The position numbers were made by a program, and so were the translations under genes. The notes under the pieces are model-generated. The model was not told the DNA's origin, ran no database searches, and saw nothing but the letters and a program-made list of their open reading frames with translations. Source: Chlorokybus atmophyticus (taxonomy: Eukaryota; Plantae; Mesostigma and Chlorokybus algae). Taken from it: a stretch of 49,687 bases of DNA. Location of the stretch: NCBI GenBank assembly GCA_009103225.1, contig RHPI01001921.1, positions 1-49,687 of the forward strand, written 5' to 3'. Below are positions 22,689 through 49,687 of this stretch, in pieces. Position 1 is the first letter of the stretch; the number at the start of each line of letters is the position of its first letter.

Positions 22689-22749
22689 CACCCACAACCA
22701 TCACAACTGCAGACGCATTTACAAGAAGAATGCAACCATGCAACCTGGA

Positions 22750-27440: not shown

Positions 27441-27470
27441 CTCTGTCGTACCATCCATGGTACGACAGAG
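27441..27470. promoter_or_regulatory. 30-bp palindrome within a GTAC-rich putative divergent promoter
   Basis: CTCTGTCGTACCAT-CC-ATGGTACGACAGAG. Six GTAC cores fall in about 27330-27470. Confidence 0.45.
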
Positions 27471-27529
27471 GCATTGCTCGATCAGCCCAAATGGGAGTTA
27501 GCGTGCACTCACCCAAACACGCTTCATTG

Positions 27530-29757
27530 ATGGCCGGATGATGGCACGCAGGGGCACCAGGTCGATGACGGGTCGAATGTCAGGCTTGATGGGCCTGGGT
27601 TCGACTAGGAGGCAGAGGACCAGGAGTCGGAGGAGGCGGCGGCGGCGGCGTGGCACATCTTGCGAGAAGTTGTGGTCGTAAGAGTTCAAGCAGCGAAGCC
27701 AGCTACTACCGGTCGCCACGTCATGGATCATGGCAGGCGTCAGCAATGGGGCTGTCCAACATGCATCATCAACATTGGACAAACCAGCAGGCAAGCCATT
27801 AAAGACCATCTTCACACAGAGAGCTGCTTGGTGGCTCGCTTTCTGCAACAAGGAGTGGATCAGGAGCTGCAGTCCTTGGAGCCCCTTGTCAGAACCATGC
27901 GGGACCAATTGCGGCTATGGGAACAAGCACAAAGGAATGCAGAGGTACGCTCAACAGTCACATGCATTTCCTTGCAAGAGCAATTTGTTTTTTAGCGCAG
28001 TCCATGTGATATATGTAGCGTGGCTGCAGGCCTCCACTATTCACCCATACCCACCCTACAGTCAAGCCGACATTGCGGAAGCAAGAGCAGATAGACAGAG
28101 CTGGGCGGCGGTATGTTGTTGCCAATCTCGCTGTGCATTATGACTGCAATGTCGGCTCCAATGCATGCCTACCTTTGCATGCTATAGGATGTGCGTGAGC
28201 GTGCGAAGTCGCGCGCGCGTGCCGAACGAAGTAGGCTGGGTTTGAGCACAGGAGCGCGTGGCCATTCGTCCGGCAATCAACCAGTAGTGCATTAACCAGC
28301 AATGACGCAGTCCATGCAATCATTCGCGCATCAACCAGCAATGTCGTAGGTGACTGTTCTAAGCAACCAAGTAATTACGGTGTGACGCAGTTGACTATTG
28401 CAATTGTTGTGTCGCATGCATGCAGCTAACCCACATGTGATTGGTTGACAGCACCTCAGTGCACTAGGTCCTATTAAAACTCCTATGCAAGCCTGGATTG
28501 GATCCCATCCAATGGTCCTTCAATCCCACTTGCTGATGGGCGCGGCGGCAATGCGGCATCAGTTTAACATGCATGTTGGCCTGTTGAATCTCAACATGAC
28601 CATTGGGGCAGTGGCGCCTCCTGTGCCCATAGCTTCGTAACGAGTCTGCAAGGGTGGCGGGGGAAGTGCACCCAATACCACCTTGTCAGCCCCCATGTCT
28701 TCCGCTGCTCCATGCAGCCCACGGGCCATTGAGGTAAGTCGCTGTCTTTTATGCTTGTGCCTTTGTAATAATGCGTTTGGCACTGCATAAGCTTACATTC
28801 GTCATTTGCAATATTGTAAGCCATCTTATCATGTGTCCTATATACAGGCCCCCTTGCTGCATGCACAAGTGGTCTCACCTGACGCACCTGCTCCCCTCGC
28901 AGCCAGAGCGCATCTACCTTCCGTGGCACCAGTCCTTTATGCACTGCCGTCTCCTCCACGAGCAGCACCGATAATTGCGGGGCAACAATCCTTCTTGCCG
29001 CAACTTACGAGACCACAGCACAATGCAACTACCGATGTGGCTTCTGCACCTACCTTACCCCACCCGCTGCAAATTGAAGCCGGCAGTCTGCCCCAAGCTC
29101 AGGTATTTTATGATTCACTGTGACTGTCACCGTCGCTGAAACGACCACAAGTCGCCTGAAATCAAAGACAGAATGTAAGTGTTGAGAACGCTTCCTCAGT
29201 GCATGGTCGTACATGTCATTGTGCATTCATAGACTGCACTTGTGTCACCAGAACGACACAGTCAATCACACTGTCAGAGAGGCGTCTGTACGCCTTTTAG
29301 AAGGGATATTTAACTCAGCTGAAAGCAAGTGCGCTGAGCTTACACGCGTGCTAGATAGACTATTCCTGCTGTTAACACAGATAGACTCCAGAATAGAACA
29401 AGAGAAAGAACAGAGGGTATGTTTGTGTTATTCGTAAATGAGTTGTGTGTAATTCGTGTTCTAACTGGTGGTTATGATTCGCAGAAACTTACCAAGGAAG
29501 TGTTCCGTAAGGCAGAGACCACAATTCGCAAAGGCCTTCAAGAGATCCGCTCCCGCTCAGGGCGCCATGGTGACACGGGCTGCAAATCAGCACAGGCTGA
29601 AGGAGCAGGATTATCAGTCAACCTGTCCCTAGTTTTCTGGCCATTGTTGCCACAGTTGAACACTTGGCTGGCAGAAGGCACTGCGGTCACAATTGTTACA
29701 CTATGCACAAAGCACCTAAGCTTCCAGGTGACAAAAGGCTCACACCGCAGTCTATAG
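27530..29757 (+). pseudogene. Gene A: acidic leader, CxxC-x12-H-x5-C zinc-finger-like exon, Pro/Ala-rich exons, then coiled-coil exons
   Basis: WGCPTCIINIGQTSRQAIKDHLHTESC, with GT-AG introns. Downstream exons NDTVNHTVREASVRLLEG...EKEQR and KLTKEVFRKAETTIRKGLQEI. In-frame TAG at 27606 (GFD*EAEDQE). Ends are approximate. Confidence 0.55.
27717..29126 (+). repeat. Left arm of a long inverted repeat (at least 1.4 kb); may extend further left
   Basis: Reverse complement of 48269-49687. The ORF track shows near-identical peptides at 27730..28143(+) and 49261..49674(-). Confidence 0.97.
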
Positions 29758-29920
29758 CACGAGAGTCTACAGCACGCGACTTATTGCAGCTGCGATAACC
29801 AGTGCCGAAGTCATACTGCGCACAACGCACAACACATGCGCACAACGCACGCGCGAGCGAACAAAACTTCCCAATGACGGAATCTGACAACAAATACTTC
29901 CAAATGAATCAACTTCTAGT

Positions 29921-30004
29921 GCCTGTGACCTAGGGTTCGTCGGAGCGGCCTATGCGGTCGCCTGTGACCTAGGGTTCGTTGGAGCGGCCTATGCGGTCGC
30001 CTGT
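29921..30004. repeat. 39-bp tandem duplication at the probable 5' end of the SET gene
   Basis: gcctgtgacctagggttcgt(c/t)ggagcggcctatgcggtc x2, plus gcctgt. Confidence 0.9.
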
Positions 30005-31604
30005 CACGCCGCCGGCAGCCTGATGTTTGGTGTGCCTAAGGTAGTTCTGGCGGTGCTGGCAGAGGTGTGGTAGCAGAGTGCTGGCTTGTGTTGCACAAGA
30101 GTGTTATCCAATGCAAGTTGTTGCAGAGATCAGCAAGCTGAGAAACACCATGGATGATGACATCCCTACCGTGTCGGCGGCATCGTCGACTTCAGAGGAG
30201 ACTCGTAGGCAGCCTTCACACCAGCGGACTTTCTATTGGCACTGTCCCTACTTCAGAACAAATGTGAAGGCGGGCCATGTAAAGTCCAACGGGCTTCCAA
30301 AAACCACACACACCAAGACTGCAAAGATCGCGCAGCACCTGCACATCAGATATTGCAGGTACATGCGCAGACAAACCAACCAGGGCGGCAGGGAGACAGC
30401 AGATGAGCTGAAGGCACGGATGGGGGATTCTCTCTCCAAACCAGTACGGGTGCGTGCGATGTTGTGAAAGTGCGTTTGTTCATATGGACTTGTAGACTCA
30501 TAGACGTTGTATGCATGCTAGTGAACTAATATCTGGGCAAAAGACTATGCAACAAAATTGACTTACGTGAAGCATATGTTAGCGTGCAGGCCCTGAATCA
30601 TCCAAAACAAAGCAGAGTTTCCGTCGACAACGTGCGGAGAGTCACCGAGGAGTATCTGCGAAAGCATCACACTGGAGCCTTTGCATTTGTAAGCACATGC
30701 AGCATGCAACTGTTAGCGAAACAAATGCCATTACAACGCCTTGGTTGCTAACCTTGTCGCTTGTTACACAGAACAAGAAATTCTGGGATGACGCTGAGCA
30801 CGATTACAACAACATCCCCCTCTACCCGAAGGAGCAAATCACACCAAAGCGGACAAAGCGGCAGCGGCAGCAAGGTTCAGGTGTTGCCGCTGCAGGTTCA
30901 GCGGCAGAAGCGTCAACAGCGGAGGAAACCGAGTTCGACTTCGCTGCGACAGAGACGAGGGAGCCAGAGGAGCTTGAGGAACAACTTGAGGATGTGATGC
31001 AGGAGGGGTCGGAGGAGTCAGCGCAGAAGGCTACGGAGGAGGTGTTGGAATTGGAGCAGTCTGAGGAGGAAGAGGTGGTGCCACCTGCAAAGAAACCGAG
31101 GCATGCCAGCTGGCAAGGCATGAAAATAGGAACGTCATCGGCAGCCGGCTCTCCCCAAACTCCCCAAACACCTGTGAGTATCCATGCGAATACTCATAGA
31201 CTGCTCTGATCAGGACATGTGCGCGTTGTCTTATGTCATAGGCCGAGACAGTTTGTGAGTCAATAAATGTATATGATATCCTTACCATTGTCTTACACAC
31301 AGGGTGGCAGGGTGAACCAACCTGTAGCCGATGCCCCACAGGCTACTAAGCCAAGGCAACACCGATCAGCGCAGGCCCGTGAACTGGCTGTGACCAATGC
31401 TGCAGCCGAGGTCAATCGATTCACCAAGACGGGGATGGACGCTGTGGAGTTGCCACCGCCATCAGAAGAACATCTGCGGGTGCGTCTTTGTTCGCATGGT
31501 ATCATGCATGCTGATCACATGCCATGGGCGCCATGCTGCATGCACTGCTCAGTTGCAGCCTATGACAATTCACACCAACTTACCGTCACTTGTTGTTTGC
31601 ACAG

Positions 31605-32145
31605 TGACAGAGAGCTTCCCAATCGCAAGCGCATACATAGAGCGACCGGTGACCCATGGCAGCTGTGGATGAATGGTCCAATTCCCATAGGCGAACTCTT
31701 CTATTTTGCTGGCAAAGAGTTCGTCATCAAGCCTTCAAATATCCCTGGCGCAGGGCTCGGCTTGTTCACCTGCCAGCCAATTAAGAAGGGTGACCGCATC
31801 ATGGTCTTTGACGGCAAGTGGTACTCCTACCGGGAGATGCAGAAGACATTCCCTCAGAAGGAGCACCTGCACCACCAGCGATACCACCTGCAGGTCATCA
31901 GGGACGTGCCACGCCGCCAGAGCCCTGTCATCGATGGCCACCCTCGATATGGGAACATAGCTGGCTTCCTCAACTCCAGCCGCGATACGCAGTACAAACC
32001 CAACTGCCACATCATGGACTCTGTTGATGAGGCTGCGGTGCAGACAGCTGAGGTTAGGAGTCAGAGTGTCATCGCCGCCGGGGAAGAGCTGCTCATGGAA
32101 TACGATTCCTTCCCTCCACCTACAGACGAGCAACCTACAGACCAT
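31605..32145 (+). CDS. SET domain exon (lysine methyltransferase fold)
   Basis: IKPSNIPGAGLGLFTCQPIKKGD (GxG), GNIAGFLNSS (RxxNHS-like with H replaced by S), and GEELLMEY. Confidence 0.85.
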
Positions 32146-33073
32146 GTGAGTATATGCAGCCTGTGGCTCATGCCTATAGACATCACTTGCTCTGCCAGAC
32201 ACTGTCTCCTGCTGTTATAGACTGCATATGTGAGAGCTGTGCGGTCTATGACCTTGTCATTCAGCATTGCAAACAATGTGCTGATCACCGTCTTACCTCA
32301 AGTCATGGAGTACTTTTTCGAGGCGGCCAGAGAAAAGTTTATCAAGGAGGCAACAGAGTTGGCAGCTCGCCATGGCGTCGCGCTCGAAGACGGCGCGTAC
32401 CTCGCAGCTTGCACTGCACCGCGTCAAGCTGGTGAATCTTTAGGCTCCTACACATGGAGGATGTAGTATCGAGAAGACCATTTTGTCCATGGTGCGCAAT
32501 GGTCTGAATGAAAGCAGGCGACATTGGTTGACTGAGGAGCAGATAGCTGCCGTGCGCACCAATGTTCAAAACGCCCAAGATATGACTGCACAGTGGCAGG
32601 CTGAGCAAAAGCAATTGCAGCAACGCAACAAGGCGGAGTGGGAGACACGCCGGCTACGCATCAACGCCATTGCTAATCGGAGGAAACAGAAGCGAGAAGT
32701 TTGGCTGGAAGAGCAGATGAAGACCATCCATTTTCAAGATCCAGGTGGGGCTGAGAATTACAAGTCCTTGCGCGCATACCTCATCAACAAGTGGGAGTGC
32801 AACCATCCTTGGCCATCCATTCCTGCTGCAGCTCCTGGTCCGACTCCTTCTAGTGCTGCTTCTGGTGCTGCGGCTACCTCTAGCAATCCTTCTCAAGCTG
32901 CTGTCGATGCTGCTCTTGCCTCAGCTGCTGCTGCTGCTGCTGCACTTGCAGCATTGGGAGGGGTTTCGGGGCGACCTTCAGTTCCTCTAGTGTTTCCGAA
33001 CATGCCACCACAAGGAAGCGCAGAAAAGGATGCCATAGACCGTGGCCATCAAACTGCTGGAGGGACTTCAGGT

Positions 33074-33497
33074 TGTTGAGAGTATTCCTACATACGATCA
33101 GCATCGACCCTCCACACAGGAGTAGAAGGTCGTAAGGACGAGCACTAGGTCCGGACTTAGCAAGATGGCATCGTCGGACCAGACTCCGGACTCCAGACTG
33201 GAGCCTTACTAACTGCTTCGTATCTCCGCGTATACTTACTCATATTAGGCGTGTAAGAGCTTGTTGGAAAGCTCTGGTTGTAAGGAAGACAACACAGCTT
33301 AGAGCGCGTCAAACGGCTGAGTATAGCTTACGCAGTGCTTGCAAACGTAGACGTGTGTGTAACTGGCTGGTATAAGAACCAGCGGACAACTTGTAATAGA
33401 TGAATGTGATGTGACTTGTGTATGCTCTGGTGGCGGTAGCTCTGTCTCTGTGTATCCATGCTTGCCTCAACTACATGTGCATGCTAGTCCTTCAACA
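33074..33497 (+). repeat. 5' LTR (424 bp)
   Basis: TG...CA ends; 7 mismatches to the 3' LTR by eye. Confidence 0.97.
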
Positions 33498-33510
33498 GGT
33501 TATGGGCCCA
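33498..33510 (+). other. Primer-binding site of the half-tRNAiMet type
   Basis: GGTTATGGGCCCA directly after the 5' LTR, as in Drosophila copia-type elements primed by a tRNAiMet fragment. Confidence 0.85.
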
Positions 33511-33624
33511 CACTACGCTTGAGGAGTGTGAGACTAGCTTGTGTGCATAGTAGTTCTACACTACGGTAGCTTGTTGGTAGCAGAGCCTTGGGTGTCAACT
33601 GCAAGAAAGGCAGGCTCGACAGAA

Positions 33625-36600
33625 ATGGAGGCGACCTACGACAAGGGGCAGATTGCAAAGCTGGACACCGACAACTACAACACATGGTGCGTGGAGATGA
33701 AGGCCTTGCTCATCCACAAGAAGGTGTGGAAGTACGTTGATCCGAAGGCACCACCACCAACACCAGGAGCGAACACTGTGTGGTCAGAGCATTCAGCAGA
33801 AGCACACTCTTTGCTTGTGTTGAACAGCAAACCGCATCACTTTCCCATGCTCACTGCATGTGAAGATGGTAGACAAGCTTGGGAAAAGCTATCAGCCGTT
33901 TTCAGAGCCAAGAACAATGCCAGAAAGTTGCATCTACGCAAGCAGCTCAGCGCACTCAGGAAGGAGGCAGCAGAACCCATCACAAAGTATGTTGCGCGCG
34001 CGAGAGAGCTGTGGGCGGACCTCATCAACGTCGGCCACAACATGGGGGAGACGGAGGTAGTGCTGGCCATTGTTGCAGGGCTACCAGCAGAGTACGAGGT
34101 CGTCGCAACCCTGCTGGAGACGTCATCATCGGAGTTGACGTTGGACGATGTGCTACCGAAGCTGCTCACCGTGGAGCAGAGGGTTGTGAAGAAGGACGAG
34201 CAAGCGGATGCCGTCGCCTTCTACACCGGCAAGCACGCAAAGAAGAGCAACCATGAAGAGAAGTACAAGGGCAACAAGCCAGGCAATCCTCGTCACAAAG
34301 ACCTCACATGCCACTGGTGTGGTTGGAAGGGGCACATTGTGAAGGACTGTAGGAGGAAACAACAGGGGCAACCTAGAGCAAGCACCAGCAACAGCGGCAA
34401 CGAGCACCAACACAAGGAGAAACATGTCGCCTTCACTGCATCCAGTTCGAGGGCGGGCACAGCTTTCTGGGTGGTGGACTCTGGCTGCGATCGTCATCTC
34501 ACACCAAACAAGGAGGTGATGGAGGGCTACAGGAAGCTGACGTCCACAATCAAGGTGGCGGGCTTCGGTGGCGAAGTACTGGTGGCTGAGGGAGTTGGCA
34601 ACGTACGACTCCAGTGCAAGGTTGGTAACACACTACGCGAGGTGTTGTTACGCAACGTCCTGCATGTTCCTAAGGCTATTGCGAGTCTATTCTCTGTGAG
34701 GGTTGCGGAGCGCTTAGGCGCGGAGATCCTATTTCGGAAGGGTGGCTGCTCAGTCATCCTTGACGGGGTCGTGCACATGGTTGGAATCGCTGATCCGGGA
34801 GGGCTCTACCACGTGGAGCAGCCTCAAGACAGAGACATTCAAGCCATGGTGGTGAAGGACAAGGAGTCGCCAACATTGTGGCATCGGAGGTTCGGGCATC
34901 TCAGCTACGTCAACCTCACTCGCCTTGTCGCTGAGAAGATGGTCAAGGGCATCCATCTCAGCACAGAAGAACTCAAGAATGCATCAGGTGCACTTTGTGA
35001 ACCATGCCTGGTTGCAAAGCAGCATGCTATGCCATTCCCATCATCCTCTTCTAGCAGTCAGCATCCTTGCGAGCTTGTGCACATGGATGTCTGTGGCCCT
35101 ATGCGCATTGTGGCGAAGGGAGGGGCCAGGTACTTTGCTACATTCCTCGACGACTACAGCAAGCTGTCCATCATCTTTCCATTGACGCTGAAGTCAGAAG
35201 TTGCTGGAGCTGTGCGCACAGTTGTGGCCTTGTTGGAGACCCAGTCTGGCAACAAGATGAAGGCAATGAGGAGTGATCGAGGAGGGGAGTACATCAACAA
35301 GGAGTTGAAGGAGTTCTTCGCCAGCAAGGGCATACGCCACGAGACAACGGCACCCTACACCCCGCAGCAGAATGGAGCAGCTGAACGCCTCAACAGGACA
35401 CTCTTGGAGCGTGTTCGAGCCATGCTCAACGACACAAAGATGGAAGACAGTTTGTGGAAGGAGGCGGTACTCACTGCCAACTACATCCGCAACAGGTCTC
35501 CGGTGAGCTCAGAGCAGAAGACTCCGTGGGAGCACTTCTATGGAGCCACACCAGATGTGAGTGGTATGCGTGTGTTTGGATGCACGGCATATGCACTAGT
35601 GCCTAAACAGCTCAGGCACAAGCTGGAGCCGGTCAGCAAGAAGGGCATCTTCGTTGGCTATGAACCGGGTTCCAAGGCTTACAGGATCTTGCTCGAGGAC
35701 ACTCAGAAGATCATCGTGAGCAGAGAGGTGGTTTTCCACGAGGGATTATCACAACCAGAAGCAGGCTTCTTTCCTGAAGATGAAGCACAGCCGGAGCATC
35801 CTGAAACAGTGGAGGCTACAGGCAAGGCCATCATCGACGATAAGGGTGAGCAGGACTCCACTGTAGCAGACAAGCAGTCGCACCTGCAGCAGGAGCACGC
35901 AGCTCGGAGATACCCAGTGAGGGAGAGAAAGGCACCTGACTTCCTACACAAGGCACACGTCGCCAGTGTGCAGAATGAGGAGCCAAGCACCTACGAGGAG
36001 GCATTGTTAGCACCAGATGCGGAGCAATGGCAGCGTGCTATGGACGAGGAGATTGCGTCACTCCATGCCAACAACACTTGGTCACTGGAGCAGTTACCGC
36101 AAGGAGTGAAGACCATTCCAGTGAAATGGGTCTTCAAGGTGAAGCGTGATGGTCAGGGCAACATTGAGCGCTACAAGGCAAGACTGGTGGCAAAGGGCTT
36201 CTTGCAGCAGGAAGGTGTGGACTTCAACGAAGTGTTTGCACCTGCAAGTAAGCATACCACCTTCCGTGCACTGCTAGCTATGGTTGCTGCTGAAGACCTA
36301 GAGCTGCATCACCTGGATGTGAAGACTGCCTTCCTCTACGGAGAGCTGGAGGAGGAGATCTTCATCGAGCAACCACCTGGATATGAAGAAGGGGAGAGAG
36401 GCACAGCGTGCAAGCTGATCAAGGCACTGTACGGGCTGCGACAGGCACCGCGTATGTGGCACATCAAGCTCACCAAGGAGCTGGAGGCACTTGGCTTCAC
36501 CGCATCCTCTGCAGACCCTGGGCTCTTCATCCATGCAGACAACAAGGTCTGGCTGCTCGTGTATGTTGATGATATCATCATCACCGCCAGGCAGGTGCAC

Positions 36601-37512
36601 CACCTGCAGGAGACGAAACTTGCTCTACAGCAAGCATTCTCAGTTCGTGATCTTGGAGAGGCCAAGTGGTTCCTTGGCATGGTGATTGAGCGCGACAGGG
36701 CGGCTCGCACAATCAAGATCAGTCAGGAGCAGATGGTGAGAAGACTCGTCACCAAGTTTGGGCTCACTGAAGCGAAGACCAAGACCACACCGTTGGCACT
36801 TGGCACTGCCCTCATCAAGGCAAAGGATGAGGAGGTACTCGACAAGGCTCAGTATCCATATGGTGAGCTGGTAGGCAGCATGCTCTATCTGGCAGTGTGC
36901 ACACGTCCCGATGTTGCACATGCTGTGGGAGTACTTGCTCGCTACATGTCTGCACCGAGCATGGAGCACTGGAGAGCAGCAAAGGGAGTACTACGCTATG
37001 TTGCTGGGAGCGCAACAGTTGGCATCAAGTTTGGGAGCGGGAGCACTGAGTTGGAGGGCTACTGCGACTCGGACTTTGCTGGTGACCTCAACAGCAGGAG
37101 GTCCACTACAGGCTACGTCTTCAAGCTGAACGGAGGCGTGGTGAGCTGGAACAGCAGGCTGCAGCCAACAACAGCAGCATCTACATCAGAGGCTGAGTAC
37201 ATGGCAGCGGCAGCAGCAGTGAAGGAGGCACTCTGGCTTCGCAAGCTCATGGCAGACTTGGAGCACCCCATGGCGTGCATCGTCATCAACTGTGACAACC
37301 AAGGAGCCATCAAGTTGTTGAAGCACCCTATCGCCTCGGCAAGGACGAAGCACATTGATGTCATGCATCACTTTGTGCGTGACAGAGTCACAAGGAAGGA
37401 GGTGGAGTTCCAGTACTGCAACACCGAGGGCATGCTGGCGGACTTCATGACAAAGCCATTGTCACCACTCAAGTTCAAGACTTGTTGTGCAGGACTTGGC
37501 ATCTGTGTTTGA
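33625..37512 (+). CDS. Copia gag-pol polyprotein (gag, CCHC knuckle, protease, integrase, RT, RNase H), uninterrupted
   Basis: CHWCGWKGHIVKDC; WVVDSGC; LWHRRFGHL; VHMDVCGP, FLDDYS, RSDRGGEY, QQNGAAERLN; KARLVAKG, LDVKTAFL, YVDDII; YCDSDFAGD, EAEYMA, KHIDV. Domain order is PR-IN-RT-RH. Confidence 0.98.
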   Translation: MEATYDKGQIAKLDTDNYNTWCVEMKALLIHKKVWKYVDPKAPPPTPGANTVWSEHSAEAHSLLVLNSKPHHFPMLTACEDGRQAWEKLSAVFRAKNNARKLHLRKQLSALRKEAAEPITKYVARARELWADLINVGHNMGETEVVLAIVAGLPAEYEVVATLLETSSSELTLDDVLPKLLTVEQRVVKKDEQADAVAFYTGKHAKKSNHEEKYKGNKPGNPRHKDLTCHWCGWKGHIVKDCRRKQQGQPRASTSNSGNEHQHKEKHVAFTASSSRAGTAFWVVDSGCDRHLTPNKEVMEGYRKLTSTIKVAGFGGEVLVAEGVGNVRLQCKVGNTLREVLLRNVLHVPKAIASLFSVRVAERLGAEILFRKGGCSVILDGVVHMVGIADPGGLYHVEQPQDRDIQAMVVKDKESPTLWHRRFGHLSYVNLTRLVAEKMVKGIHLSTEELKNASGALCEPCLVAKQHAMPFPSSSSSSQHPCELVHMDVCGPMRIVAKGGARYFATFLDDYSKLSIIFPLTLKSEVAGAVRTVVALLETQSGNKMKAMRSDRGGEYINKELKEFFASKGIRHETTAPYTPQQNGAAERLNRTLLERVRAMLNDTKMEDSLWKEAVLTANYIRNRSPVSSEQKTPWEHFYGATPDVSGMRVFGCTAYALVPKQLRHKLEPVSKKGIFVGYEPGSKAYRILLEDTQKIIVSREVVFHEGLSQPEAGFFPEDEAQPEHPETVEATGKAIIDDKGEQDSTVADKQSHLQQEHAARRYPVRERKAPDFLHKAHVASVQNEEPSTYEEALLAPDAEQWQRAMDEEIASLHANNTWSLEQLPQGVKTIPVKWVFKVKRDGQGNIERYKARLVAKGFLQQEGVDFNEVFAPASKHTTFRALLAMVAAEDLELHHLDVKTAFLYGELEEEIFIEQPPGYEEGERGTACKLIKALYGLRQAPRMWHIKLTKELEALGFTASSADPGLFIHADNKVWLLVYVDDIIITARQVHHLQETKLALQQAFSVRDLGEAKWFLGMVIERDRAARTIKISQEQMVRRLVTKFGLTEAKTKTTPLALGTALIKAKDEEVLDKAQYPYGELVGSMLYLAVCTRPDVAHAVGVLARYMSAPSMEHWRAAKGVLRYVAGSATVGIKFGSGSTELEGYCDSDFAGDLNSRRSTTGYVFKLNGGVVSWNSRLQPTTAASTSEAEYMAAAAAVKEALWLRKLMADLEHPMACIVINCDNQGAIKLLKHPIASARTKHIDVMHHFVRDRVTRKEVEFQYCNTEGMLADFMTKPLSPLKFKTCCAGLGICV

Positions 37513-37554
37513 CTACAGGAGCAAGCGTTGGAGGTCAAGCTGCTCGCGTGGGAG

Positions 37555-37978
37555 TGTTGAGAGTATTCCTACATACGATCAGCATCGACCCTCCACACAG
37601 GAGTAGAAGGTCGTAAGGACGAGCACTAGGTCCGGACTTAGCAAGATGGCATCGTCGGACCAGACTCCGGACTCCAGACTGGAGCCTTACTAACTGCTTT
37701 GTATCTCCGCGTATACTTACTCATATTAGGCGTGTGAGAGCTTGTTGGAAAGCTCTGGTTGTAAGGAAGACAATGCAGCTTAGAGCGCGTCAAACGGCTG
37801 AGTATAGCTTACGCAGTGCTTGCAAACGTAGACGTGTGTGTAACTGGCTGGTATAAGAACCAGCGGACAACTTGTAATAGATGAATGTGATGTGACTTGT
37901 GTATGCTCTGGTGGCGGTAGCTCTGTCCGTGTGTATCCATGCTTGCCTCAGCTACATGTGCATGCTAGTCCTTCAACA
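37555..37978 (+). repeat. 3' LTR (424 bp)
   Basis: Matches the 5' LTR; preceded by a short purine-rich GTGGGAG. Confidence 0.97.
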
Positions 37979-38403
37979 CAGGTGCTGCTGAGGGTCAATA
38001 TGTCAGCGGTAATGAACCTGCTGGAGGTGATGAACCTGCTGGAGGTGATCATCATGAACCTGCTGTTGGTGATCATCATGGAGACGGCAGTGGTGATGAA
38101 CCCAGCGATCATGAAAGCAGCGATGATGACAGCAACGGTGACAGTGACAACGATGCTCGTAAGAAGTTGGAAGACGGTATCGCTGCTGCACGTTCAGGAG
38201 TCGCCAATGCTAGCAACATAGCCAAGTTGGTTGAAGGCTTTGTCCAGAACTTTCAACAGCAAGTGCCCCAACTTCAGGTAACCCTTGGCCAAAGTCAGCA
38301 TTAGTCAGTCTATGGCTACTTGTGCGTCACAGGCCGCATTGTCCATTTCGGTCAATGACCCCGCTGTTTCGTGTTTGTGCTCTAACTTGGTGTTTCGATG
38401 CAG

Positions 38404-40707
38404 CAACACCTAGAAGAGGCGTCTACAAGCACCCAGGCCGTTGCATCCGCCAGCACTGATGTCAAACGCATCCATGCAGCGGAGTTATCAACCGCTGTTG
38501 AAGCAGCAGCCAAGGCTAGCCAACAGCATGCAGAGTTGCTGCAACAGGAGAAGAAGGCCAGAGAGGAGGCCGGGGGGCGCATATAGAAGCTTGAGGTGGC
38601 AAAGCAGGAGAAGGAAAGAGAGGAGGCCGTGGGGCGCATACCACAGTTGCAGGCCGCTCTCGATGCAGCCAATGCTGAGCGACAAAGGCTGCAACAACAG
38701 GATCAGGCCAGAGCGCAAGACCGCCAGCGCGTACAACAGCTACAACAAACTTTGCAAGAGCTGGGAGAAATCAATGCTCGGCGTTCAGAGCTGGCGAGGG
38801 AAGAAGATGAACGTCTGTGCGGTGAACGCCCTGCCTTGAAAGAGCACCTCACCCGCTGCAAGCGCATTGAAGATGACGTCAAGGCCGCCTTTAACGGGAT
38901 CAGCGAGTTGGATGAAGAGTTGGTGCTGGCTTTGCAGCGTGAGGATGCAGCGCAAGAGTTGGTTGCCATCACTGATGACAGGGACCGCCTACGACAGCAG
39001 TTGGCGACAGCCGAGGAGGCCAGGAAAAAGCATCAGAACCTTCTTGACCAGCTTCAGCAGCAGCCCTCCGCGCAAGCACAAAAGCTCCAAGCAGAGGTTG
39101 ACGCCCTTAATGCAAGACTTCAGCGTCAGCAGTCACACCAAGACTCCATTCGGAAGCAGCAGGAAGACACGCTTCAGCACCAGTTGAGGTGGACCAATGC
39201 GGAGAGGCAACGCTTGGAAACAGAGAATGTGAGCCTACGGCAGGCGAGGAGCAGCTTTAAAGGATCAGCAGCAGCACGCTTGGAGGAGATCCAGAGCCTG
39301 CAAGAGCGCCTGCGCAAAGCCAAGGAGGCCTCGCAACAAGCGCGTGACGCTGCGCGCAAAGCCGAGGAGGCCTCTCAACTCCAAATCCAGCTTCAGCAAA
39401 TGGCCTCCCTCCAGCGGCAGGCGCGTGAGGAGGCGGACCGCCGACAAAAGGAAAATGCAGAACTGAGTGAGCGCCTGCGCCAAGCTGAGGAGGTCAGGAA
39501 GAAGCAGCAGGAGAGCGGCGGCCAGCAGCAGCAGGAGGCGTCCACTCAGCAGAAGGCGCTTGAGGAGGCGGACCGTCTACGACAAGACAATGCAAGCCTG
39601 ACTGAGCGGCTGCGCCAAAGCGAGGAGGCCAAGAACAAGCTGGAGGAGAGCAGCGGCCAGCAGCAGCAGCAGGAGTCCTCCGCTCAGCAGGTGCGTGAAG
39701 AGGCGGACCGCCTACGAGAGGAGAATTTGCAACTGAGTGAGCGCCTGCGCTCAACCGAGGAGGCCAGGAAGAAGCTGCAGGCGAGCAGCCTACGGCAGGA
39801 CAATGAGAGCCTGCGCGAGCGCCTGCGCACAGGCGAGGAGGCCAGGAGGAAGCTCCGTGCAGCAGTGCAGTCTCTCAATGAAAAACTCGGGAAGGCCTCT
39901 CAACAGGCGCAAGAGGCTGGGCGCAAGCTGCAAACAGAGGTTGAATCTTTGACTGCTGAGAAGAACCGCCTCGAAGCAAGAGTGGAGTCTCTCAACAAAC
40001 AACTCCAGCGGCTGGCCTCTCAAACGCAAGAGACTGGGGGCAAGCTGCAAGCAGAGGCAAGCAGGCAAGCAGACGCCCTGAATGCGGAGGTGAAACGCCT
40101 GCGTCAGGAAAATGCCAAACTCCAGAAGTCCAATAAGAAGCTTATCAAAGACGGCAAGCGACCAGCCACCATGGACGACCCGAAAATCCTAAAGGCGCAG
40201 GCGGACCTGGCAGAATCGGAAGAAAACGTTGCTCAAGCCATGCAGCGTGTCAGTCATACAGAGAAGCTGCTCGAAGATACCCAGCAGAGGCTCGAGGAAA
40301 CGCTTCAGATGCTGCAGACTGTAATGCCAGGTGGTGGAGCTGCTGACATTCCTTCCACGTCCGCACTACCGCCAGAAGCTGAACTGCAAGAGAAAGTCAT
40401 TGAACAGCAAAGGGAGAATAATCAACTTGATAGGCGGGTCACGAACTTAGAAGATGACCTGGAGCTCGTTGAAAAACAAATTCGCATGGAAGGCGTGCTG
40501 GTTGATGAGTGGATGCGGGTTGTAATGGAGGACTTCCTGGCTAAAAGTCCTGGCGCGCGGGCACGTTCGTTGCGCGAAGGAGGAGCACAGACTACCCAGC
40601 GCATACAGCAGTACTTGCAAGGTTGGCAACAGCTGATGGCTCCAGAGCTTGCGGTCTGCATACAAGCTCGCAATGCCTGGGCGCAGAGGAACAATCAAGC
40701 GACATGA
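38404..40707 (+). CDS. Long Gln/Glu-rich coiled-coil exon with internal repeats of about 43 aa (part of the SET gene)
   Basis: 703-aa ORF plus the in-frame upstream segment. The unit EEADRLRx(D/E)NxxL(S/T)ERLRxxEExxxK occurs 3-4 times. Confidence 0.75.
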
Positions 40708-41279
40708 GACACTTGGGACAGTGATCCTGCTGCACTGTGTGTTTTGATCAGAAACACAGCGCACCATTACCTCCGTGACATCAATCAACGGCGAGCGGAG
40801 AATGGGCTCCCTTTGTACGCCAACACTTTGGAGGCGTTTGGTGCTCTGCAGCCGGGCCTCACTCACTTTTTACTTCTGCTTGATCAGAACATGGCGAACA
40901 GATCATATACACACCTCACTGCGGCACAACGGGAAGTTATGCACCTGGGCCCACACTACACCAAAGCCGTTTATCATAACCTGATCGGCTACTACTTGAG
41001 CAGACACTCACCACCACCACCGCCACCACCACCACCCTAGTATGGCCTATAGACTGAGTCAGTAGCACCCAGGTACCTACTTCAGGTTGCTTATAGTCCA
41101 GCTGCAGGCTGGGCTTACTGGCATCCATTCAGTGTACATAGCCTGCAGAACAGATGTGCATAAGTGTATACAGTAATATATTGCCATTACATGTTCATTG
41201 CTTGCCCTGCTTGCTCGGCCATCACACATGCAGTCGCATGCACACGCGCACAGTGCACATAGTTGTCTGCAAGGCGCAG

Positions 41280-44200
41280 TTATCCGAACTGGTCTATGAT
41301 ACAGACACACGCACTCACAAACACGTGAATGCAAGTGCAAACACACTCACTTGCTGCCTGCTGTCCTGGCTTCCAATACATGCGATGTTGGTTGAATTTC
41401 ATTCGCCGTCCATCATTTCTACCCCTCTCAGTCCACGCAAAGCTGCTTCTGCTGCTTCCTTGCCTTGGCCAGTCGAGCTTTGTTTTGGCTGAGAAAGGGT
41501 CCTCCACCTGGTCGCTCGCAGATGTGTTAACCACCTAGACGCCTAGCCTCCTCCCCCCTGCTTTCTTCAGGTAGTCGACTACCATATGACCGTCGGACCG
41601 CACCTCTTTGACCACAACAACCCAAGGGGGTGGGTCAGCAGGATCTTCATCTGGGGGCTCATGCGGAAGTCTGAAGTCGAAAATGGACTTGCTGTTGTGC
41701 CGCATCTCCAGGACATCGCCCTTTTCTGGCCACACCGGCAAGGGGATGTCGGCTGCAGTGACTCTCAACTCTGTGCTGTCATAGTCGTACGCCAATTGAT
41801 GATTTGCTACATCACGGTTGAGCAACACCCAGAGCTTGCGTTGCAACTGGTCTCCACCAATGAGCGTAAACTCATCTGCCAAACGCCCAATGCACTGTGC
41901 ACCAGTGTCTAGGTCAATCAGGTCATTGCCCATGGCATCACGCTTCTTGGTATAAGGCCGCACTTGCACATGGACAGTGGATTTCCGCCAATTAAACAGG
42001 TAGATCTCATCCACCCGGCATGGTGCGACAGTTGGGTCCGCCATCTTCACGTTATCAACGCCTCTGCGTCTGCAAATATTAAAGGCTTTACTCACGCACT
42101 TTATATCAAGAGATGACAGTAGACACTGCCCATGAGACACCTGACAGTGCCTATGAGACTTTAGGTCAGAGCAATAGATTACATAATTTGTAGACTAAAC
42201 CACACCTGTAGATGACCCCGTTACGCAGATATGCGCAGGACTTGCGTATGCCTCCGGGCAAGTTGCCAGTGATGTTCTCAACGCGCTTGATTTCCAAGGC
42301 CAAGGGTCCCTGAAGAGGGACAGGCTTCCTGGTGCTGCCAATAAGGATGCCCTTTTCTCTGATCAGTCGCGCATGCTCCAAGTCTGGGAATTTCTCAGCG
42401 AGGGTCCAGAGCTCCATGGCGTGCTTCTGAGTGCGCACTTCGTAATGACAGTCACTACATGCTCCACTCAGAGGCTGGTAAACCTGCTGAGAGTGCGCCA
42501 CTATATCATTAGCTCGGTGGCACAACAGCTTTCCAGTCCTCTGATCTTCTCGCATGACGTTGAGCGTCCTCAGAAACCATCTCCTTTGTGTACGCCGCAT
42601 GTAGCTGATCTCAAACTGCTTCCCATTGGTGAAGGTGTTGACATAGTTGGACACAGTGCGCTCTTGCACAACACACCAGTACACATCATGACTCCCGTGC
42701 CAGATGATGTCCTCCAGAATGTGACCGGCACCGGCCACATGCTCGTTGGGCCTTTTGTTGGTGCCAAACAGGTCCTTCGAGTAGACCCTCCATTATTTCA
42801 AGAGCGTCAGCAAGTTCCTACAGCTCCGCAGTCCAGCCATGTAGGCGAGAGTTGTGGAAGAAGATGCGGATGAGCAAGTGAAGCGCAAAGCTGACGCCTC
42901 TGGTTGCTTCGTCTACCAGATCGGACACAGTGTATGGCACAGCATACTGCACGAACATCTGCAAGTCCTGGGCCTTGAACTAAGCCAGGTGCTTGCTGAT
43001 GCCTCTTGGGAAACGTTTGCTCTTCAAGTCCATGGGGCTTGATATGCGCATCTGAGACAGCCTGCGCTCCACCTTGGCAATGTCTTCGACATGCTTTGAA
43101 CTGTCTGCACCCAGCGTACTGTGCACGAAACTCTTGCAAAGCCCCTCCAGCAACAGGTGCATCGTGTCATAGACAAAGTCACGGCAAGGGTTAAACTCAT
43201 GCAGATGCCACAACCGCCAGAGTGGAGATTTCCCTGTGATGCCGCACTCCATTGATTTTTCTTTCTGGTTTTGGCCATCGAGTGAGTCCACCATGCACGC
43301 GCTATCGAACGCATCCTTTGCTGCTCTCTCTGCTGGGGGATGGCGGCAGTAGTAGCGATTGTCACCATAAAAATGGTCTGTACGTGTCCTCGTAGTATCT
43401 TCACCCTGCTCAGCACGCCGGGGCACTTGGTGCTGAGTGGCTTTGAGGAGACAACGCCGGCAGGGGACGAGGCCTCCATTCTTAAACTGGCCTATCTCAC
43501 ATTGCGCTGGCTGGTCACCCGTCCAAGCCCACAGCACTACCCGCAGCGTTATCTCTTGACCTGCAATGAAGTCAACATCAGTATCTCACAACCAGTCTGA
43601 TAGACTGTTATAGGCCGCACTGGGCAGTGCAGCCTATGACAGTCTCATAGACCGCAAGAAGGCAGATATGCTATAACCAAGTCGCAGCCACTGAACAGTG
43701 GCTATGAGACTTTAGCACACACAAAAATGGACTGCATAAGTTGTAGACTCTGGATAGTGCCTATGAGACTTTGGGTGATATAGGTGACAAAACATGTTAT
43801 AACCCAGTCATTACCTGGTTGTCGATCAAGCACGCGGCTGTCGATATGATTGGAATCGAGGCCATAACGAACAGTGAAGCCGTTCGAGTAGAGGTTCTCC
43901 AGGTCACGCACCAGTGGTTCCAGAAAGGGCTTCAGACTGTCCACACCGTTTGGGAGCTGATCAGTGGGAACAAAGAGCAAAGGCATGACGGAAGACTCTT
44001 GTGAGGAAATGCGCTTCCTGCCATTGAGCACAGAGGCACTGACAACGGTGCAGCTCTGCTTCACAGTGGTTGTTGAGCTGAAGCCGTCGGCGTGGATTAG
44101 CAGGGCTATGTTGCGAGGGTCGCCAAGAGCTTGCTGTACCATCTGATGGTTGTTTTTGTGGCACCCTGAGCATTTAAATGTTACGTGATCGCCTGCGTTG

Positions 44201-45381
44201 TGATGCTCCAAATCGACATCCGGGATGTGGTGGCAGAATGCGCAGGACACAGGCAGCTTATTTTTGTGGCGAGGGTCCCAGAAGCTGCAGTGATGCTGCT
44301 TCTTCGCACCATGCCAGTACTCAGTGTTTGCAGCAGGTAGTTGTTCCACAGGGACGTGCAACCACTCATCTTTGTGGCGCCATTCCTCAAGATAGTCGTG
44401 AGCGATTGAAGGGACAGCTAACTTGGCGCTGAGCCAGGCACCTATACGATTGTACAAGAAGTCGCAACATTCTTTGCGAACCCTGCCGCATCCCCCTCCG
44501 CACGGTGTGTTGCGAAGGCGATCAATCATTTTTTGCTTGGTCTCGCCCGTGTCCGAGTCCTCGTCATCTTCATTGAGTGTGGGATAAGGTGCATCAAACA
44601 AGTACTTGCATGTGGGACAGGCGGTCAGGCGCTGAGGAACAGGCATGCCGAGCGCGGCCAACAATTTATCCACGGCGGCAATGTCTGTTGGCAGCTCATC
44701 CGCGACAGGGCTGTGCGATATTGTGTCGCCTGAGGCTGGCGATGTCATCCCGCAACTGCTCCTGTTCAAAAGGAACCTCCAAGGCCAGCTTGACCACAGA
44801 ATTTATCTGGCCAAAGATGAGCTTCATAATCTCGTTGACGAGAGCAACCTGGACACCAGAATCTTCCAGGGCTGTCACAATCTTTAGGTAGATATCCAGC
44901 CACTTCTTCGTAGCAGACTCCGATGGTGGTTGGCTGGGCTCGAGAGGTTGACTATGGGGAATAGGTGGTGCCCACCTGCTTGCGGCTGCCAGGTCAAGTG
45001 CACGGTGCACCCTTGCAACTGCTTCGTCCACCATTTATGATGACAGATCTTGGTTAGCACGCCAGCGATCAACACCAATCCACATCACCACGCTATCAAG
45101 AACCACAAGCAAGACACACGCGTGCATGGCTGTGTCATAGACCAGACTGGCACTGTCCAGTGCCTATGAGTCCTTAGGTCTCAGCAAAGGAATGCATAAG
45201 TCGTAGACACCGGACAGTGCCTATGAGACTTTAGGTCAGAGCAATGGAGTGCATGACTCGTAGACACTGGACAGTGTCTATGAGACTTTCGGTTAGAGCA
45301 ATAGATGCATAACTCATAGACCGCACTGCTTACCATGCCGCGGCATCCACTGAAACTGCAGTTGCAGATAACCTGACGATT

Positions 45382-45415
<34 letters not shown>

Positions 45416-45944
45416 CTCTCCACATGATCAGATGACTCGTCGGCGAATGAGCCACCTCCAGCTTCAGCAGCCGGTAACAGAGGGGAATGCGAAGTGGATG
45501 GCTGGCCAGCGGTTGTAGGGGGGTGAGCAGCAGGCTGAGTTGCTGAAGCTGGCCTGCAGGGAGTCATATTAGGCGCTTAACAACTTCTGTCATAGAATCT
45601 GTGCTGGCTGTGTCGCAATGAGGCTTGAAAGCTAGCTAGTGGGGGCAAGGATGTTATCTGAGTGAGGGGTCTGCCTGCCCATCCACCTCCATGGGGGACG
45701 CGTTGTCACCAGCGAGGCCGCTGTCAGCCAAAAGTTGGGACACCTCAGCTTCTCTGCGGGCAAGAGCTTGCTCTCTTTTACTCAACTCCAAGTCCTTCTG
45801 ACGTAGGAGACCTTGCGTTGCGTTGACAACCAACTTGGAACGCTGCTTCCGCTTGTGCAAAGCTGCAAGGTTGACTGCAGGTAGCTTGAATGCGATAGAC
45901 TGGTGGAGTCTTTTAGCAATATCAGCTGCTTTTCGGTCCGCCAT
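41280..45944 (-). pseudogene. CACTA/En-Spm Tnp2-family (TnpD-like) DDE transposase, multi-exon, disabled
   Basis: DPRNIALLIHADGF, FLEPLVRDLENLY, TGDQPA, CRRC, YDTMHLLLEG, FKAQDLQMF, RPNEH...HILEDIIWHGSHDVYWCVVQER. In-frame TAGs at 42980, 42818 and 41535. Frameshifts near 44715 and 42800. Confidence 0.88.
45150..45325. repeat. 57-bp intronic repeat x3, with related copies in two other introns of the transposase
   Basis: cagtgcctatgagactttaggtcagagcaa-like cores at 45158, 45215 and 45272; also at 43696/43755 and 42145. Confidence 0.9.
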
Positions 45945-46299
45945 GCTGGGTGCATGCGTAGTACCCACGAAACCAGCTGTTCCAAAGGTTTTCGCCACCG
46001 CCGCCGCCGCCGCCGAGACTGCAGCGCAAGCCCAAAACCCTAGCAAATGGACAGAGGACCATGCATGCCCAGTGCCTGCTACTCGTTTAGCATTGGCGCA
46101 CGTGACCTTGGGAGCAACGAGCCAGGTGAGATGTGTCGTATGCTTCCGACGTCATTCTTCACCGTTGATATCATAGTATATCAACGATCTAAAACAGCTG
46201 TTGAGTTGTTGAGTGCTGTTTCGGTTTCGGAACCATGCATGGTCTATGAGGGCCGCTTGCAACCGTACCAGTGCAGCTTGGTCCCGCTTGTGAGGACAT

Positions 46300-46599
46300 A
46301 ATTGGTCCGTACAGTACATGCGTTCTGTACCAGTGCTGCCCTGGCTCATAGGCCGCAGGGCATGCGACCAGCCTTGGTCCTACTGCTCAGGCCGCGTGCT
46401 GACCAGTGCTGTACCGGTCTACAAGCCGCGGGACACGCCACCAGCCCTGGTCCGGTCATTCGGACCATATCAGCGGGCTCCGGGGCCGGACCACCGGTGG
46501 TCCGATCATGCCGGACCAGTCGCGGCACTGGTACGCTACAACGTACCAGACGTGGTCTACGGGCTGCGTACGACTGGTCCGCGCGTAAAAAGCCCTGTG
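46300..46599. promoter_or_regulatory. GGACC/GGTCC- and GTAC-dense, CpG-rich field upstream of the transposase (promoter or subterminal repeats)
   Basis: Many tggtcc/ggacca motifs in both orientations and about 7 GTAC cores. The field ends in CCCTGTG at 46593-46599 (CACAGGG on the minus strand). Confidence 0.5.
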
Positions 46600-46957
46600 C
46601 AATCCCTAGAGGTCTGTTTAGACCGCATTCTCCGCGTTTGCTCCCACTTATTGCAAACTTTCGTCACCCACCTCGAGGCATGCCGCATGCGGTGATGCAG
46701 CGCGTCTTGGGCGTACTGTAGGGTGATCAACTCCTTTGCACTACGAGTCAGCCCCTCAAAGCGTCTGCGCGTCGGTGCTTTGAGCTTAGGCAGCTCGTGC
46801 CGCACCGGTTGTCTCTCTGGACGATGCTGAGCAACCACTTGACGCTGTAAACCCGCCTGTGCCTACTCAGGACACACAGTCAGCCCCAGTGAGGCTTGAA
46901 GGCGCTGTGCTTCTCCTAATGTTGTAACGATGCCTCACCTTTCCTTTTTTGGTCCTG

Positions 46958-49687
46958 TCAGCGTCCCTTGTTCCAACAACCTTCTTCTTTGTTTTTTTTG
47001 TCACCCTGCACATCCTGGCAGGCGCTCTCCGTGGCACTGTCACTCAGAGGAGGTAAGGCGTTATCTTCTTGCTCCACAGCCTTGCGCTTGTTGGTTGCCT
47101 CCCGTTCCTCCACGACCTCATGTTGCTTCATGAGGTCGAGCATGAAGCCTTTGTCTTTCAGCGCAGCTTTCAGGACACCTCGATCAATCTCGTTACCAAC
47201 AAGACAGGCTGGGATCAATGTGGCAAGCTTAGAGGGAGAGGGCGAGCTACAGCTGCTTCTTGATGGAGATGCCTCTGGATGGTCAGAGTGCGGTGGCAAG
47301 TGAGTCTCCGCGGCAGGAAGGGAGGGTTCTAAATTGGGATTGCGATTGCATGTGGCTGTGGTTGAGGGGAGGCAGGATGTGCAAAACACTCGGCTACTTC
47401 TTGCCTACCATAAAAAGGCGAGGCCTGAGGCGTTGGCGCAGCACTCTGGGTCACAGCCGGTGGTAGCGGGGAATTGGCAACGCCATTCCGCCACTCTTCG
47501 ATTAGCTGTGTTACCTCCGGTGGCACTTCATGCATAGGCCACGACCACTGTTCGGTGCTTGCAGGCTTGAGGAGCCAAAAGTGTGCTTCTGGCTCATCAG
47601 GAGCAGTGTTGCCCACCACCAGGACTGAGTTGGGGGCTTCTTTATTTCCAACCCAAACTGCGCTGCCGGGCCGTGGCACCCACTCCCCATGCTCGAGCTG
47701 AACGGTCACGCAGCCAATCAAGAAGCCCAGCTTGTTGGCAAACATGGTCATCTGCAGGTGCTCGACGTACACATCTTTTCTCCGTGCGATCTGTCGCACC
47801 TTGGCCATGGCTAGGTCAATGTTGCAGTTGACATCAGCCAACAGGGCCGCAGGCAGTTTGTCGTAATACTGCGCCATCTCTCCCAGGCACCAGTGGCTCT
47901 GCAGAAGTCTGAAATTCTGCTCGCCACGCCTGCATCGACAGCCTTGGCGGTGATTTTGCGGAGAGTGTGCCCCCTGCCGTCGTCGTCCATGGTGTCCAGC
48001 ATGGCCCAAAATCTGCTCGAGCTGGGGCACTTATGATCATCCAGGACACTTTGCGCTATGGATGGCCTGGCGCGAAATACACAATGGTAGAAGCAATTAC
48101 CATCCGTTGGCGCATTGAAGTGGTCCCATGAGGCGAGCTGGCCACCTAGCATGACTGATGGCCGTATGCGGGTTGCGGCCAGCTCTTTTGATGACTCGCT
48201 GGCAGGTGGTGACTCCTGCTGCATGCGCATACAGCACTCACATGGTGTGTCCAACTGTGGACGGCAAGAGTCACAGTGACTGATAAAGTACCTGAGTTTG
48301 GGGCAGACTGCCGGCTTCAACTTGCAGCGGGTGGGGTAAGGTAGGTGCAGAAACCACATCGGTTGTTGCATTGTGCTGTTGTCTCGCCGGTGGCGGCAAG
48401 AAGGATTGTTGCCCCGCAATCACCGGTGCTGCCCGTGGAGGAGATGGCAGTGCATGAAGGACTGGTGCCGCGGAAGGTGGTTGCGCTCTGGCTGGGAGGG
48501 GAGCAGGAGCTGCAGGTGAGACCACTTGTGCATGCAGCAAGGGGGGCTGTATACAGGACCCAGGATAAGATGGCTCACAATGTTGCAAAGGACGAATATA
48601 AGCTTGTGCAGTGCCTGACGCAGTGTTACCAAGGCACGAGCATAAAAGACAGCGACTTACCTGAATGGCCCATGGGCTGCATGGAGCAGGGGAAGTCATG
48701 GGGGCTGACAAGGTGGTATTGGCTGCACTCTCCCCGCCACCCTCGATGGCAGACTCATCACGGAGCTCGTGAGCCATGGGCACATCATGCGCCACTGCCC
48801 CAATGGACATGTCGGGATTCAACAGGCCAACATGCATGTTAAACTGATGCCGCATTGCCGCCGCGCCCATCAGCAAGTGGGATTGAAGGACCAGTTGATG
48901 GGATTGAATCCAGGCTTGCATAGGAGCTCCAACAGGACCTAGTGCACTGTGGTGCTGTCAACCAATTACATGTGGGTTAGCTGCATGCTTGCGACACTGC
49001 AATTGCAATAGTCAACTGCGTCACACCGTCATCAGTTGGTTGCTTTGAACAGTCACCTGCGGCATTGCTGGTTGATGCACGAATGATTCCATGGACTGCG
49101 TCATTGCTGGTTGATGCACTATTGGTTGAATGCCGGACGAATGGCCACACGCTCCTGTGCTCAAACCCAACCTACTTCGTTCGGCACGCGCGCGCGACTT
49201 CGCACGCTCACGCACATCCTAGCATGCAAAGGTAGGCATGCATTGGAGCCGACATTGCAGTCAACATGCACAGCGAGATTGGCAACAACATACCGCCGCC
49301 CAGCTCTGTCTATCTGCTCTTGCTTCCGCAATGTCGGCTTGACTGTAGGGTGGGTATGGGTGAATAGTGGAGGCCTGCAGCCACGCTACATATATCACAT
49401 GGACTGCGCTAAAAAACAAATTGCTCTTGCAAGGAAATGCATGTGACTGTTGAGCGTACCTCTGCATTCCTTTGTGCTTGTTCCCACAGCCGCAATTGGT
49501 CCCGCATGGTTCTGACAAGGGGCTCCAAGGACTGCAGCTCCTGATCCACTCCTTGTTGCAGAAAGCGAGCCACCAAGCAGCTCTCTGTGTGAAGATGGTC
49601 TTTAATGGCTTGCCTGCTGGTTTGTCCAATGTTGGTGATGCATGTTGGACAGCCCCATTGCTGACGCCTGCCATGATCCATGACGTG
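46958..49687 (-). CDS. Gene A': zinc-finger and Pro/Ala exons shared with gene A, joined to an OTU-family cysteine protease domain; 5' end lies outside the window
   Basis: After the shared exons an acceptor near 48221 leads to HFNAPTDGNCFYHCVF (OTU DGNC motif) and later EAHFWLL (catalytic His). An intron of about 47329-47408 restores the frame to EPSLPAAETH...KGR*. A frame change near 47930 is unresolved. Confidence 0.7.
48269..49687 (-). repeat. Right arm of the long inverted repeat, running off the window end
   Basis: Reverse complement of 27717-29126. Confidence 0.97.

Follow-up and report, generated by a model that had tools for sequence, protein, structure and literature searches.

A candidate composite CMC/EnSpm-like transposon remnant with exon-bearing inverted repeats in Chlorokybus atmophyticus

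Described relatives and the Chlorokybus locus

In MuDR the mudrA and mudrB genes are transcribed convergently from promoters located in terminal repeats of approximately 215 bp, and Ulp1 proteases are carried by both MULE and CACTA elements. Enlarged EnSpm families of 16–20 kb with four to five open reading frames (ORFs) are published for the red alga Chondrus crispus (PMC6431247, citing Kojima 2013), and OTU peptidase domains occur in Helentrons/Helitrons (PMC6431247). SET cargo in DNA transposons is described for HarbingerS and for Phytophthora MuDR families (PMC12730594). Here we describe a 22-kb stretch of Chlorokybus atmophyticus contig RHPI01001921.1, in which a SET gene, a Tnp2-like transposase gene and an OTU-like gene are bracketed by a long inverted repeat; the whole stretch of DNA analysed, referred to as the window, comprises 49,687 nt. 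The original prediction for this locus had proposed a giant CACTA-type element with an architecture unlike that of any described family, a claim that was too strong given that SET cargo, OTU cargo and 16–20-kb EnSpm families with four to five ORFs are published.

We interpret the interval, with a probability of approximately 0.45, as the remnant of one large composite CMC/EnSpm (CACTA-like) transposon locus made up of two convergent transcription units, with ends that repeat the same promoter-proximal gene module and with this copy being dead. The inverted repeat of at least 1.4 kb around approximately 19 kb (approximately 14 kb without an inserted copia retrotransposon) described earlier was recovered, the arms showing 92.8% identity over 1430 aligned columns and lying 19,125 nt apart, or about 14.2 kb apart without the copia; the length of the whole locus without this insertion is at least 17.1 kb. 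The single-unit interpretation is favoured because the arms are mirror images with inward-pointing ATG exons, because their outer 470 nt (intron included) are 99.4% identical compared with approximately 90% further in, because a private motif links the SET region with the transposase region, and because the inner boundaries lack a terminus pair. It is further favoured because the Cys/His finger of the arms resembles the module at the start of the SET gene, because the OTU exon continues the reading frame of the final right-arm exon, and because relatives of the transposase show conserved exon blocks in collinear order. Three defects show that this copy is dead: the copia has split one of the coding exons of the SET gene, the OTU-like sequence changes frame, and a stop codon interrupts the left arm at a point where the right arm is open. 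The proposal of one mobile unit stood in part: the SET and transposase regions are tied together by an 11-bp motif, whereas the arms and the OTU segment are without this motif and neither termini nor a target duplication were found in the window.

The locus resembles En/Spm (CACTA) elements in having a Tnp2-like transposase with DGF, D-x-PA and C-x2-C blocks, in being large with several genes, and in containing short motifs in both orientations. It differs from them in several respects: known terminal inverted repeats measure 10–28 bp compared with arms of at least 1.4 kb here, CACTA termini and a 3-bp duplication were not seen in a window that excludes the right end, the locus motif is scattered through introns rather than subterminal, and the Pfam Tnp2 match falls below threshold. 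The two inward-facing genes, each of which would start in a repeat arm, recall MuDR/Mutator, although the transposase is of another superfamily, the arms are approximately seven times longer and contain coding exons, and their promoter role is putative. As in HarbingerS and the Phytophthora MuDR families, a SET lysine-methyltransferase-type gene lies beside the transposase; those elements, however, belong to other superfamilies, whilst the SET domain here has an NSS pocket motif and continues, as a fusion, into an acidic region and a coiled coil of 700 residues. Carriage of a protease for ubiquitin-like modifiers is shared with the OTU of Helentrons and the Ulp1 of MULE and CACTA elements, but in Helentrons the OTU is a domain of the Rep/helicase protein, whereas here it is a separate finger-linked gene, recognized by its motifs and broken. 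The one unusual feature of the locus, putatively new, would be ends of kilobase length that contain exons in an element of the CACTA type.

Gene content of the two convergent halves

The two halves of the locus are convergent and meet at 41.0–41.5 kb, with the SET gene on the + strand and the transposase and OTU-like genes on the − strand. The presence of a very large SET/acidic/coiled-coil gene was confirmed. The SET ORF scored 38.1 bits against the Pfam SET profile (cut-off 22.4), and an AlphaFold model produced from a 26-sequence alignment had a core with predicted local distance difference test (pLDDT) values above 90. The best Foldseek matches of this model were the SET domains of MLL1, SETD8, EZH2 and NSD1 (E approximately 2e-7), and the acidic and coiled-coil part is encoded by the ORF at 38596–40707. 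The S-adenosylmethionine (AdoMet) pocket motif reads GFLNSSRD (NSS) compared with NHSC (NHS) in canonical enzymes, whilst the second SET motif is EELLMEYD, in which the Tyr of the canonical ELxF/YDY is kept. The sequence GNxAGxxNSS is common to the nearest SET relatives, a small group, in place of the usual NHS, and as NSS replaces NHS both here and in these relatives, methyltransferase activity of the predicted protein is uncertain.

These relatives consist of an orphan ORF in an intron of a lycophyte gene, a sequence on a contig with giant-virus-type genes, and one that recurs on six short Logan contigs; no Tnp2-like or OTU-like gene was found among their neighbours on the intron, virus-like and short contigs. 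An exhaustive HMMER scan of the SET ORF against 1.84 billion representatives, a set without the proteins of this genome, gave no match better than E 1e-8 and did not recover the protein encoded in the window itself, and a word-indexed protein search with the same ORF gave no match. Within the coiled-coil ORF, three tandem repeats of 135 nt (45 residues) with 74–78% identity were observed at 39387–39807.

The retrotransposon interrupting this gene is an intact Ty1/copia element with long terminal repeats (LTRs) of 424 nt that are 98.3% identical and with domains in the order gag, protease, integrase and reverse transcriptase. It is flanked by a 5-bp target duplication (CAGGT) and its insertion site is a coding exon of the SET gene. 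In silico deletion of the copia and one copy of the target duplication produced a 316-codon open frame reaching position 38302.

On the − strand, the predicted Tnp2 transposase was borne out in its sequence blocks and relatives but not in its profile score. The ORF at 43702–44769 matched Pfam Transposase_21 with an E-value of 2.3e-5, although the score of 24.1 bits is below the cut-off of 28.6; this was the only transposase family matched, and the blocks DGF, GDxPAxC (D-x-PA) and CxxC are readable in the sequence. Relatives with 26–44% identity, located on one Logan contig and six metagenome contigs, align collinearly with the exon ORFs and are themselves encoded with few or no introns. The metagenome relatives scored 18.8 bits against Transposase_21, likewise a weak match, indicating that the transposase represents a distant branch of the EnSpm/CMC group. 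A word-indexed protein search with the transposase ORF returned two matches at 35% identity. The six metagenome contigs, of 1.2–8 kb, contained no SET and no OTU. A repeat of approximately 57 bp containing TCATAGGCACTGT was observed in three non-coding stretches of the transposase gene (42135–42195, 43679–43776 and 45151–45321).

The OTU-protease gene had also been proposed, and here the catalytic loops, structural comparison and language-model leads were in its favour, whilst the profile search was not and the frame is shifted. The two catalytic loops occur in the expected order, PTDGNCFYHC (Cys) being followed approximately 170 residues on by AHFWLL (His). The best solved-structure match was a nairovirus L-protein fragment aligned on the Cys loop (E 0.11), which we take to be an OTU domain, and among language-model neighbours OTU was the top named family for both halves (0.86 and 0.89), values that serve as leads only. 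A GT-AG gap of either 37 or 73 nt would allow the last right-arm exon to be spliced in frame to the OTU exon. In contrast, the Pfam OTU profile (PF02338) matched neither of the ORFs and neither of the halves, with E-values of up to 5 allowed. The reading frame changes near 47890–47905, where no plausible intron is present, and either the frame is broken in this copy or the sequence has been misread by one base. From its loops and neighbours, 46961–48254 is probably an OTU peptidase gene, although of the named parts of the locus this is the one with the weakest support.

Convergent halves that meet at 41.0–41.5 kb and that both open with the same module might also represent two separate truncated elements lying tail to tail, finger-SET-coiled-coil on the left and finger-OTU plus transposase on the right, each with the same 5′ module. 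However, the private motif occurs both in the SET half and, within the other half, in the transposase part, the OTU part being without it, and no internal termini are present at 41.0–41.5 kb; we consider two such elements very unlikely.

If the locus is instead a single composite transposon, as we prefer, the + strand would carry one gene of approximately 1,700 codons comprising the Cys/His module, the SET domain, the acidic region and the long coiled coil. On the − strand, a zinc-finger plus OTU-like gene would lie upstream of the gene for a Tnp2-like DDE transposase. The 1.4-kb repeat would then represent one 5′ gene module placed at both outer edges, with a start codon, a Cys/His-finger exon, an intron and Q/P-rich exons. 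In the preferred reading the arms would belong to the ends of the element, each holding a promoter and first exons and driving inward transcription as the terminal repeats of MuDR do. The transposase would cut and paste the whole unit, and the common finger module may bring the lysine-methyltransferase-type and deubiquitinase-type enzymes to the same chromatin. The finger target could perhaps be the element's own 11-bp motif, in which case the result would be altered host marking of the element. The more far-reaching proposal, of a CACTA-type family in which kilobase-long terminal arms supply a promoter and first zinc-finger exons and express a SET writer and an OTU eraser convergently at the same chromatin sites, possibly at the 11-bp motif itself, is in our judgement unlikely.

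Transposons with chromatin enzymes may actively counter their own silencing or mark themselves, and most known cases carry one such enzyme. If the proposal is true, methyltransferase-type and deubiquitinase-type genes behind the same DNA- or chromatin-targeting finger would amount to a compact writer/eraser system of natural origin, in which the manipulation of host chromatin by mobile DNA could be tested in an early-diverging streptophyte. Another superfamily would also have acquired a MuDR-like layout independently, here with a writer and an eraser built in. With this copy dead and its ends unseen, the value of the locus for now is as a pointer towards intact copies and not as a result in itself.

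Inverted-repeat arms, dispersed motif and extent of the unit

The alignment of the two arms consists of three ungapped blocks at 99%, 93% and 90% identity. The left edge of the repeat is set at 27717 because the window stops at 49687, and 1.4 kb (1.43 kb) is therefore a minimum length. The prediction that each arm starts an inward-pointing gene was upheld at the level of the first exon: both contain an ATG and a 74-codon Cys/His exon reading MDHGRRQQWGCPTC...HLHTESC, and both copies point inward. The gradient of identity along the arms excludes uniform decay after a single duplication, and its explanation requires that the outer ends have been under constraint at the DNA level or subject to gene conversion.

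That the window ends inside an arm, in a short piece starting at a telomere, might suggest that the inverted repeat is an assembly artefact at the contig end. However, 19 kb separates the arms, and their alignment contains 104 differing positions as well as indels, with the gradient described above, whereas fold-back artefacts are contiguous and identical. A fold-back assembly artefact was rejected on the divergence and spacing of the arms, and we regard an artefactual repeat as highly improbable.

A cluster of short repeats was observed at 27310–27480, just upstream of the left-arm ATG, where approximately 130 bp contain four of the window's eight copies of GTACCAT/ATGGTAC together with three near-copies and, at 27437–27474, an 18-nt palindrome. 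This cluster is a possible subterminal or promoter structure, the mirror copy of which would fall beyond the end of the window. It and the cluster at 46265–46581 are built of different motifs. The latter may once have been subterminal, or may represent a promoter.

The 11-bp motif TYATAGRCYGC was present in 10 exact copies compared with 0.12 expected, all of them within 29227–46356 and none elsewhere in the window. The copies lie in non-coding parts of the SET and transposase regions, and neither the copia nor the 27 kb left of the locus contains any; this shared private motif indicates that the SET and transposase regions share a history. Copies often occur as inverted pairs 5–13 nt apart, for example TTATAGGCCGCACTGGGCAGTGCAGCCTATGA (32215–32251, 43608–43655). 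Judged by their sequence, these pairs would form small palindromes in introns, as expected of a dimeric binding site or a hairpin.

Searches for the ends of an element gave negative results. CACT...AGTG pairs across the window were at chance level (the pair 17092/27180, for example, scored 15/20, as did approximately 14 others at a similar level). The 9-mer CACTGGTAC/GTACCAGTG was enriched, with five copies, but provided no consistent terminus pair. No CA...TG terminus pair with a target duplication was found between 29.1–30.1 kb and 46.1–47.0 kb, where shuffled sequences gave approximately 3.5, and a smaller inner element would accordingly be one without visible ends.

In addition to the sub-threshold transposase score and the absent Pfam OTU match, a number of observations weigh against the interval being one composite unit. 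The open frames of the inner arms have ratios of nonsynonymous to synonymous differences (pN/pS) of approximately 1 or more, values that indicate neutral evolution with no purifying selection, and an in-frame TAA at 28638 interrupts the left arm at a point where the right arm is open for 228 codons. Given these two results, at least one of the arms does not function as a gene start. The shorter sequence TCATAGRC occurs approximately twice per kb in the core but is absent from the arms and OTU segment (5.3 kb), and the subterminal-like cluster at 46265–46581 sits inside the arms. The SET gene may have its own N-terminus at 30045–30464, with a start at approximately 30.1 kb; the Cys/His module there weakly resembles arm exon 1 (BLASTP E 8e-4). 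Neither CAC...GTG termini nor a 3-bp target duplication were found in the window, the right end being beyond 49687. No second copy was seen in collections that were without the proteins of this genome, and SET, OTU and transposase were not found together around the relatives of the transposase or of the SET gene, the contigs concerned being short.

The dispersed motif and the arm boundaries bear most directly on the main rival explanation, in which the element is the core only, from approximately 29.1 to 46.4–47.0 kb (approximately 12.5 kb without the copia) and containing SET and transposase. This core would be nested in a small long-armed finger-OTU element, or would lie within an inverted duplication of the 5′ part of that gene. 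Consistent with this, the core motif is absent from the arms and the OTU segment, homology between the arms stops 32 nt into the intron, at 29134/48260, the SET gene has a possible Cys/His start of its own at approximately 30.1 kb, and a subterminal-like repeat cluster is present at 46265–46581. However, the supposed inner boundaries show no terminus pair or target duplication, compared with 3.5 chance matches in shuffles, and no matching repeat cluster occurs at the left inner boundary. A core-only element also needs either the coincidence of an element inserted exactly between mirror arms or an extra, undescribed long-armed element, and we hold it to be rather doubtful.

The neutral divergence of the inner arms and the left-arm stop would also be expected if the zinc-finger-OTU gene were an ordinary host gene and the left arm the product of a single local duplication, in inverted orientation, of the 5′ end of that gene, with partial homogenisation through subsequent gene conversion and no role in mobility. 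The identity gradient is what a gene-conversion tract gives, and the setting is subtelomeric and repeat-rich. On the other hand, the OTU frame is broken, which is unusual for a needed host gene, and the finger of the arms resembles the N-terminal module of the SET gene; a host-gene origin therefore appears distinctly unlikely to us.

Feature coordinates and flanking sequence

The features of the locus are listed in Table 1 in order of position.

Table 1. Positions of predicted features of the Chlorokybus atmophyticus locus within the window
Feature	Coordinates	Strand	Remarks
Left arm of inverted repeat	27717–29134	+	ATG 27723; Cys/His-finger exon, intron, Q/P-rich open frames; in-frame TAA 28638
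Arm exon 1, left	27723–27944	+	74 codons; Cys/His motif WGCPTC...HLHTESC, then GT donor
Degenerate second Cys/His module	30045–30464	+	Open frame, YWHCPYF...HLHIRYC
SET-domain exon ORF	31267–32220	+	SET domain at codons 163–279
Exon split by copia, upstream part	32444–33073	+	Resumes at 37984–38302
Ty1/copia LTR retrotransposon, intact	33074–37978	+	Full gag-pol ORF
Coiled-coil ORF, C-terminal part of SET gene	38596–40707	+	703 codons; acidic and coiled-coil; 45-residue tandem repeats
Tail ORF after coiled coil	40744–41040	+	SET gene
Tnp2-like (CMC/EnSpm-type) transposase gene	41535–45567	−	Six exon-like ORFs
Transposase exon ORFs	45181–45567, 44696–45034, 43702–44769, 42980–43537, 42166–42738, 41535–42140	−	
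Short-repeat cluster	46265–46581	.	TGGTCCG/CGGACCA seven times; GTACCAGTG/CACTGGTAC three times; between OTU gene end and transposase gene start
OTU-like coding region	46961–48254	−	Two halves in different frames
OTU-like gene, Cys-loop half	in frame of 48419–47814	−	
OTU-like gene, His-loop half	in frame of 48030–47332	−	
OTU-like gene, C-terminal ORF	47404–46961	−	
Right arm of inverted repeat	48260–49687	−	ATG 49681; arm cut by window end; 228-codon frame 48957–48274 open
Arm exon 1, mirror copy in right arm	49681–49460	−	74 codons, Cys/His

Positions 1–140 of the window consist of approximately 22 copies of CCCTAA (the TTAGGG-type telomere repeat). As the window opens with these repeats, the 49.7-kb piece begins at the end of a chromosome, which makes the locus subtelomeric; the CCCTAA-type repeat recurs as a short interstitial run at 15515–15538. 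No Pfam domain was found in the tested ORFs of the 27 kb to the left of the locus, and neither CpG depletion nor GC content marked a boundary. Six-frame self-comparison of the window and a comparison of 10-mers common to different segments revealed no further paralogy. In the left flank, tandem and dispersed repeats with a unit of 72–107 nt were observed at 22720–24260 and 24851–25159. At 14751–14793 lies a 43-bp mini-palindrome, CACTGGTAC...GTACCAGTG, formed by the same 9-mer as the cluster at 46.3 kb; a related element could have left it as a footprint or very small derivative, or it could have arisen by chance.

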